In this document: piece after piece, positions 27,147 through 27,810 of the stretch
Position numbering within the stretch: the first letter of the stretch is position 1
Layout: each line of letters starts with the position of its first letter
Assembly: GCF_000400465.1 (NCBI RefSeq)
Contig: NW_008806274.1
Coordinates: forward strand, 270,244-302,243
DNA length: 32,000 nucleotides
Source of the DNA: Wallemia ichthyophaga EXF-994
Taxonomy: Eukaryota; Fungi; Basidiomycota
Direction: 5' to 3'
Program-made: the position numbers and the translations under genes
The notes under the pieces: generated by a model
Seen by the model: the letters and a program-made list of their open reading frames with translations, nothing else
What the model was told of the DNA's origin: nothing
Database searches by the model: none

Positions 27147-27387
27147 GTGTGTGCAGCGTAATTTTTGATAGCGCAGCCCTCTTACAATCCCGCGCAGGTA
27201 AGCTGGCGTCGTTGCTGCTGCTGCGTTTGATCACCGCTCACCGCTCTCCAGGTAAGCTAGGGAGGTAGCGAGAAGACTCTGCTCACACAGCCAAACAGGT
27301 GAGGAGAGCATCTTCGAGCATTCCGTTGCTAACCATGCGCAGGTCGGTGTGGTTTGCGTTTCTCTCCCTCTGCTCACCGCTCTCCAG
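27147..27387 (+). other. Chain of five abutting intron-like units in the RPL37 5' leader
   Basis: Units 27147-27197, 27198-27251, 27252-27298, 27299-27342 and 27343-27387 each have a GT start, a CTYAC/CTAAC branch motif 10-13 nt before the end, and a CAG end. Confidence 0.7.
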
Positions 27388-27396
27388 ACCAGCAAG

Positions 27397-27810
27397 ATGA
27401 CTAAGGGTACCACATCTATGGGTAAGAGGCAAAGCGTCAAGTCCCACGGGATTTGTCGCCGTTGCAACGGTCGCTCATGGCACTACCAAGTGAGTTACCA
27501 CGGGATTCGACGGGTTTCTACCGCTTCCCGCGACACCTAAACGCCTAATGCTGACATCCCCACCGCGCCAATCCTGCGCTAGCTGTGGATTTCCTAATGC
27601 CAAGACACGCTCTTTCAACTGGGGTGCCAAAGCTAAGAGAAGGTGCGCCTTGGTTTTGACACTCCCCGGACTTGTCTTATCACTCATCTTCCCCTCAGAT
27701 CCACCACTGGTACTGGCCGCATGAGATCCCTCAAGTATGTCCCAAGACGCTTCAAGAACGGCTTCCGCGAGGGCACCACCGCTACCAAGAAGGTTTCAGC
27801 TTCTGCTTAA
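27397..27810 (+). CDS. RPL37: 60S ribosomal protein eL37, 93 aa
   Basis: [11 protein letters not shown]...[12 protein letters not shown]|[26 protein letters not shown]|[25 protein letters not shown]. Exons 27397-27489, 27566-27642 and 27699-27810. The first intron ends in CG, not AG (see findings). Confidence 0.95.

Follow-up and report, generated by a model that had tools for sequence, protein, structure and literature searches.

A probable GT-CG intron in the ribosomal protein eL37 gene of Wallemia ichthyophaga

Introduction

The eL37 (RPL37) gene of Wallemia ichthyophaga occupies positions 27397-27810 of the forward strand of the window, i.e., the whole 32,000-nt stretch of DNA that was analyzed. 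The first intron of this apparently functional gene is probably a fixed and constitutively used GT-CG intron, which would derive from an old basidiomycete intron whose position has shifted. Judged by its signals, it appears to be an ordinary short U2-type intron except that C replaces A at position -2 of the 3′ splice site. The CG is fixed in W. ichthyophaga among the strain assemblies checked. Whereas the sequence features, this fixation, the selection on exon 1 and the uniqueness of the CG boundary are demonstrated below, the actual use of the CG site, the isoform ratios and the evolutionary route are inferred.

The RPL37 Locus

With the CG boundary, the gene model consists of three coding exons and two introns and yields a product of 93 aa. 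Coding exon 1 (27397-27489, + strand) starts with the ATG at 27397, ends with the codons CAC TAC CAA and translates into residues M1-Q31, including the zinc ligands Cys20 and Cys23. Intron 1 (27490-27565, + strand, 76 nt) would run from GT to CG, the sole boundary that gives both the 11-residue cysteine spacing and a contiguous Pfam match. Coding exon 2 (27566-27642, + strand) begins with R32, ends after the second base of the R57 codon and contributes the other two zinc ligands, Cys35 and Cys38. Intron 2 (27643-27698, + strand, 56 nt) is canonical (GTGCGC...CAG, phase 2), and coding exon 3 (27699-27810, + strand) ends with the stop codon TAA at 27808-27810.

In a search of a protein collection, the best full-length match to the 93-aa product is the eL37 of Wallemia mellicola (P0001, 92 aa, 89% identity). 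The annotated W. ichthyophaga protein of 68 aa (P0011) is 100% identical to the C-terminal two thirds of the 93-aa product. Upstream of the eL37 gene, W. ichthyophaga and W. mellicola alike have a proteasome-subunit gene on the opposite strand, and this synteny identifies the locus as the eL37 ortholog rather than a stray copy. Sequence and gene order thus both place the W. ichthyophaga gene as the ortholog of the sister-species eL37. No second W. ichthyophaga eL37 occurs among the 120 listed of 443 protein matches in annotated proteomes, and the gene appears to be single-copy. Neighboring open reading frames in the window belong to ordinary housekeeping genes of fungi (pyruvate carboxylase, sulfate permease, a THI20-like kinase and a bZIP factor).

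Protein Evidence for the CG Boundary

The two cysteine pairs of eL37 are separated by exactly 11 residues (C-x2-C-x11-C-x2-C) in 120 of 120 other homologs among the matches listed. The earlier note on this DNA had proposed that this arrangement is restored by an intron end at 27565, where the CG follows the branch A by 11 nt; such an end does restore it, in a product of 93 aa, and the C4 zinc finger is present only with this intron end. The in-frame neighbors, AC at 27562, GC at 27568 and AA at 27571, would give spacers of 12, 10 and 9 residues, respectively. The 93-aa product matches the Pfam family Ribosomal_L37e (PF01907) without gaps over positions 1-53 of 53, scoring 77.3 bits (match cut-off, 27.6 bits). 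Exon 1 alone covers positions 1-29 of this family and the annotated 68-aa product positions 31-53. Its alignment with the eL37 chains of solved ribosomes likewise runs from end to end (residues 1-90, E 2e-32).

The sister species provides the closest comparison at the junction itself. W. mellicola has ...WHYQKQSCASC... where the CG boundary gives ...WHYQRQSCASC... in W. ichthyophaga, and the alignment makes CGC CAA (27566-71) homologous to the coding AAG CAG of W. mellicola. That two halves of one conserved domain flank the intron and are in frame only at the CG boundary is beyond chance.

Splice Signals of Intron 1

The signals upstream of the acceptor are those of a regular intron. The donor GTGAGT (27490-95) directly follows CAA and fits the U2-type 5′ splice site GTRNGT, and the branch site GCTGAC (27550-55, branch A at 27554) conforms to CTRAY and lies 11 nt from 27565. 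Both coordinates had been given in the earlier note and prove correct, as does its observation that no AG occurs from the branch motif to 27581: the only AG dinucleotides in 27490-27600 are 27493-94, within the donor, and 27581-82. The branch site is followed by the pyrimidine-rich tail ATCCCCACCG, and the 3′ end would be the CG at 27564-65. An intron ending at 27565 reads ...CCCCACCG/CGC and gives the product ...HYQ-RQS-CASC.... The 3′ terminal AG of canonical U2-type introns is therefore absent from the boundary that would give the functional mRNA.

The first AG 3′ of the branch site belongs to a UAG at 27580-27582 (+ strand), 28 nt away and located in the Ala-Ser codons GCT AGC. Its use as the acceptor produces HYQ-LWIS-stop, with the TAA at 27595-97, and removes Cys35 and Cys38, exactly as had been predicted from the sequence. 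For other candidate introns joining long ORFs in the window, motif scans give a distance from branch A to acceptor of about 5-25 nt; motif-only scans of this kind are noisy and were used only for this rough range. Accordingly, 11 nt is typical, whereas a spacing of 28 nt reaches or exceeds the upper limit, and the range is wider than the 10-13 nt originally proposed.

Other ways of splicing the transcript were tried and rejected. Combining all GT or GC donors (27400-27575) with all AG acceptors (to 27640) yields no in-frame product with four correctly spaced cysteines. Skipping of exon 2 is out of frame, and retention of intron 1 encounters a TAA at 27538-40. A U12-type intron would require RTATCCTT and TCCTTAAC, where the donor is GTGAGTTA and the branch region AATGCTGAC. 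A stwintron or other nested arrangement fails because there is no AG inside 27495-27580, so that no internal intron can end there. Finally, the boundary cannot be slid to a canonical pair: exon 1 ends in A but the intron in G, and the intron begins with G but exon 2 with C.

No significant RNA structure that hides the UAG or exposes the CG was detected (z = -1.3 for 27556-27600, and no signal in larger segments). The small hairpin that can form (GCGC/GCGC plus CCAC/GUGG) does not reach significance. Scanning the window for Rfam families and tRNAs returned no matches, hence no embedded RNA gene accounts for intron 1.

Selection and Strain Variation

Relative to W. mellicola, exon 1 retains 29 of 31 residues with pS 0.59, dN 0.11 and dS 1.16, and the resulting dN/dS of about 0.10 indicates that it is translated and constrained like the remaining gene. 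Codons 32-93 show equal constraint (dN 0.11, dS 0.93). Within the species, a 3.26-kb alignment of 10 W. ichthyophaga sequences contains no variable site in the CDS (0/282), as against 84 of 2982 non-CDS columns (2.8%). Under neutrality of the CDS, such an absence of variation would have a probability of about 3e-4.

An exact-sequence look-up of the 68-aa protein (P0011) recovers 16 further W. ichthyophaga contigs. This protein reads 27563-65 as CCG (Pro), which places C at 27564 in all 16 further assemblies. Nine of the strain loci were read directly, and all have CCCCACCG/CGCCAA. They fall into three intron 1 haplotypes, which differ at 27542 (C/G) and 27546 (T/A), 19-23 nt upstream of the acceptor. 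The strain genomes were sequenced on a platform different from that of the reference, and IDBA-Hybrid assembled them with guidance from the reference, which limits their independence (PMC6738226). Still, the nearby SNPs among the strains indicate that the base calls at 27564 come from reads. The earlier suggestion of a base error or allele at this position is thus refuted as far as the assemblies show. In the comparison with other strains and sister species that the earlier note had suggested, every strain assembly checked carries the C, and the sister species W. mellicola has an ordinary CAG.

The two sites at 27542 and 27546 are the sole within-species SNPs of the RPL37 transcription unit 3′ of the ATG, and both lie upstream of the branch site. 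The change 27542 C>G (L007, L012, L013) makes a new AG at 27541-42. The change 27546 T>A, found in six of nine strain loci, breaks an alternative CTAAT branch-like motif; this loss supports GCTGAC as the branch site in use. In the intergenic region 3′ of RPL37, the segment 28331-28530 has about 30 variable columns in 200 nt among strains, arranged in two sharply distinct haplotypes (the window and L009 vs. the others); the published SNP density over the whole genome of W. ichthyophaga is 0.13-0.40%.

The 5′ Untranslated Region

Upstream of the ATG, the 5′UTR intronic region (27147-27387, + strand) consists of five abutting GT...AG intron-like units joined AG/GT. They span 27147-27197, 27198-27251, 27252-27298, 27299-27342 and 27343-27387 (+ strand) and measure 51, 54, 47, 44 and 45 nt, respectively. 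There is no exon between the units, and the last one is followed by AG/ACCAGCAAG-ATG. Most units contain a CTCAC or CTAAC branch-like motif. The 5′UTR of W. mellicola (L001 1344-1491) has the same architecture with three units of 47, 49 and 52 nt; its final ACCAGCAAGATG is identical to that of W. ichthyophaga, and the unit sequences differ. The dinucleotides at the junctions do not vary across 10 W. ichthyophaga sequences, in which seven SNPs fall within the units. The region looks like a long UTR intron that would be removed as a chain of short introns, by recursive splicing with zero-length exons. These units are context and are separate from the problem of the CG acceptor.

Intron Position Across Basidiomycetes

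Fomitopsis, Tilletia and Puccinia share a phase 1 eL37 intron that precedes the third Cys codon by 2 nt. The W. mellicola counterpart (GTTCGT...TTCAG) is found 3 nt before this codon, in phase 0, and intron 1 of W. ichthyophaga (GTGAGT...CACCG) 9 nt before it, also in phase 0. In the eL37 gene of Rhodotorula (P0016), the zinc-finger region has no intron, and the first intron exceeds 500 nt. All other RPL37 intron positions differ between W. ichthyophaga and W. mellicola. The closeness of the outgroup and Wallemia positions suggests that the intron is old and that its position has shifted. RPL37 thereby records moves of an intron about a single conserved site among basidiomycetes.

Shifts of intron position are documented in fungi, including a single-nucleotide shift via stwintron intermediates (PMC5587772). 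As in those cases of intron sliding, the orthologous introns of eL37 have close, non-identical positions. In contrast to the stwintron-mediated shift, the displacement in W. ichthyophaga is 6-7 nt, and the lack of an internal AG makes a nested arrangement impossible. In W. mellicola, the RPL37 introns with basidiomycete counterparts (L001 1600-1647 and 1836-1886) are exactly 1 nt upstream of the outgroup position (outgroup loci L016, L017 and L019). These offsets correspond to phase 0 vs. 1 at the third Cys codon and to phase 1 vs. 2 in the KNGF-R Arg codon (Fomitopsis only), and may be single-nucleotide intron shifts.

Proposed Mechanism and Related Systems

In the second catalytic step of splicing, the 3′ terminal G contacts the first G of the intron, and the A at position -2 contacts the branch adenosine. 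A CG site would keep the first of these contacts and lose the second. After the first catalytic step, exon 1 would be ligated at the CG close to the branch site (11 nt from its A), whose terminal G still contacts the first intron base, and the resulting mRNA would encode the complete 93-aa eL37. Ligation at such a site is suggested by the non-AG sites of yeast (PMC10711555) and by the GT-CG introns of Ganoderma lingzhi (PMC11590231). A fraction of the transcripts probably uses the AG at 27582 or retains the intron, with a premature stop either way. It speaks against the CG site that, under the rules known from yeast, a UAG located 28 nt past the branch site is a good acceptor and should be a strong competitor. 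The tail CCCCAC-CG resembles the usual pyrimidine-rich ...CAG with A replaced by C, which makes a single A-to-C substitution in an AG acceptor presumably the simplest origin of the CG now fixed in the species. The intron itself would descend from the old basidiomycete intron adjoining the third zinc-finger cysteine, shifted in both Wallemia species.

Expression evidence was sought in public collections. By exact look-up, the 93-aa protein and five alternative products (those of the three alternative junctions, the retained intron and the AG-spliced form) have no match in a collection of 15 billion proteins, some of them derived from transcripts. Scans of a metagenome collection found neither the spliced junction, allowing a variable gap, nor the genomic exon 2 (0 matches each). 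RNA-seq data of W. ichthyophaga, from libraries at 10% and 30% NaCl, exist and were analyzed with tools favoring canonical junctions (PMC3849046).

GT-CG introns are rare and not confined to Wallemia: the curated annotation of G. lingzhi contains 19 of them among about 92,000 introns (PMC11590231). Like these, intron 1 of RPL37 is found in a basidiomycete, is otherwise a normal short U2-type intron and is associated with errors in automatic gene models. Unlike these, it interrupts an essential, presumably very highly expressed and apparently single-copy ribosomal protein gene, and the CG is fixed in the species with no canonical alternative; its use is deduced from conservation, not from RNA. 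Spliceosomes of Saccharomyces cerevisiae use “BG” 3′ splice sites, which lack the AG and for the most part precede the normal site; these are proofread by Prp22 and are used markedly more when Prp18 is absent (PMC10711555). According to earlier work cited in that paper, Prp18 and Slu7 are dispensable when the distance from branch to acceptor is short (PMC10711555). The RPL37 CG resembles the BG sites in keeping the final G, in preceding the next AG and in lying at about the minimal branch distance (11 nt). However, the BG sites of yeast are low-level and mostly unproductive, with AG as the normal site, whereas in RPL37 the non-AG site would be productive and the AG unproductive.

Constitutive and efficient use of the CG could have two interpretations: an acceptor set by its distance from the branch site with a relaxed requirement at position -2, or a CG/UAG switch between productive and NMD-targeted splicing that governs eL37 dosage. 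This extension of the proposed mechanism is unlikely.

Autoregulation by unproductive splicing and NMD is established for several ribosomal protein genes, such as RPL30, RPS14B and RPL22B in yeast and rpl-12 in Caenorhabditis elegans. As in those genes, one acceptor choice in RPL37 would give protein and the other a premature stop. In contrast to those genes, the RPL37 arrangement is absent from the sister species, and its two isoforms, their regulation and any protein binding are hypothetical.

Alternative Explanations

A regulatory role for the two sites, in which the weak CG and the UAG (27582) together set the share of NMD-targeted transcripts and hence eL37 output, by autoregulation or in response to salinity or growth, is unlikely; within the locus, this feedback switch of the earlier note is supported by no more than the geometry. 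A single branch site can serve both acceptors, and splicing to the AG leads to a stop 13 nt downstream. Non-productive alternative splice sites whose products are degraded by NMD are described as widespread in intron-containing yeast genes (PMC3983031). In W. ichthyophaga, moreover, alternative 3′ splicing is the second most common class of alternative splicing, and about half of the alternatively spliced genes show it at one salinity only (Zajc et al., PMC3849046). Yet the W. mellicola acceptor is a plain TTCAG, meaning that nothing regulatory is conserved, and the competing AG is accounted for by coding, as part of the Ser codon AGC in the C-A-S-C motif, which W. mellicola has too. Nor was any significant structure or extra conserved element detected. 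That the A-to-C change instead killed the acceptor, leaving most or all transcripts mis-spliced, with eL37 supplied by an unannotated second copy or the present copy in decay, is quite improbable. Yeast standards predict very low efficiency for a CG acceptor, and in fungal annotations an enrichment of minor non-canonical sites is seen in pseudogenes and in genes with weak expression (PMC7072748). Against a crippled gene, no second eL37 was seen among the 120 listed of 443 matches and the locus is syntenic with that of W. mellicola. The CDS is invariant while the strains differ at 2.8% of flanking sites, exon 1 is constrained as strongly as the other exons, and duplicated BUSCOs amount to <1% in this 9.6-Mb genome.

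The remaining explanations alter the gene model or the base itself. The public model begins at an ATG within intron 1 (27548-27550, + strand), which overlaps the branch region, and gives a 68-aa “L37” (P0011). It is used in the strain annotations, its exact product occurs on 16 contigs, and its UniRef cluster is named as L37, but it is very improbable that this model is correct and that exon 1 lies outside the protein. Half of the zinc ligands (two of four) and Pfam positions 1-30 are missing from its product, and these are exactly what exon 1 encodes, with 29/31 residues identical in W. mellicola although synonymous change is close to saturation; the agreement among annotations, furthermore, is inherited from the reference proteome and not independent. 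Just as improbable is splicing at another non-canonical junction. The AC at 27562, the GC at 27568 and the AA at 27571 are all in frame, but they change the invariant spacer of 11 to 12, 10 or 9 and break the collinearity with W. mellicola. The GC and AA junctions also lose the terminal G of the acceptor, and the AC junction lacks the usual -2/-1 pair and has no known pairing with a GT donor. An error in the sequence, with A as the true base at 27564 and a normal CACAG acceptor, would be the simplest fix, and the strain assemblies are reference-guided. Given the C in 16 further assemblies from a different platform, nine of which were read and show three haplotypes within 25 nt, the likelihood of such an error is negligible. 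A real GT-CG intron, one of the two possibilities raised in the earlier note, is by comparison strongly supported by cysteine spacing, Pfam coverage, the W. mellicola ortholog, selection, synteny and an apparent single copy, all of them comparative evidence from sequence.

Public Annotation and Implications

The 68-aa model (P0011) is the only one of 121 listed homologs without the C4 motif. It is identical in 16 strain annotations (gene at 1501-1763 in L007-L015), and the UniRef cluster of its product is named “60S ribosomal protein L37”. Because the strain annotations took the reference proteome as evidence, the identical truncated model is inherited and recurs (PMC6738226). On the best reading, the public 68-aa models are artefacts of gene callers that accept only AG acceptors. 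Other W. ichthyophaga genes with unusual introns may have similarly truncated models. Annotation of eL37 is also inconsistent in W. mellicola, where the CBS 633.66 model has 98 aa (P0121) and the strain annotations 92 aa (P0001); one of these two models has a wrong exon boundary.

The 93-aa model corrects eL37 in every W. ichthyophaga proteome found (16 strain assemblies and the UniRef entry). The 68-aa entries, without half of the zinc finger, illustrate how AG-only callers combined with transfer from a reference proteome propagate errors. Minor non-canonical introns are a known class, to which this case adds a member of unusually large consequence rather than a system of a new kind. Should RNA confirm the junction, a non-AG acceptor would be the sole productive site in an essential, highly expressed gene, fixed during the divergence of strains. 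If acceptor choice were led by distance, further non-AG introns would be expected behind truncated gene models throughout the genome. If confirmed, intron 1 of RPL37 would offer a natural substrate, in a setting other than yeast mutants, for studying 3′ splice-site fidelity (proofreading with Prp18, Slu7 and Prp22, and the rule on branch distance).
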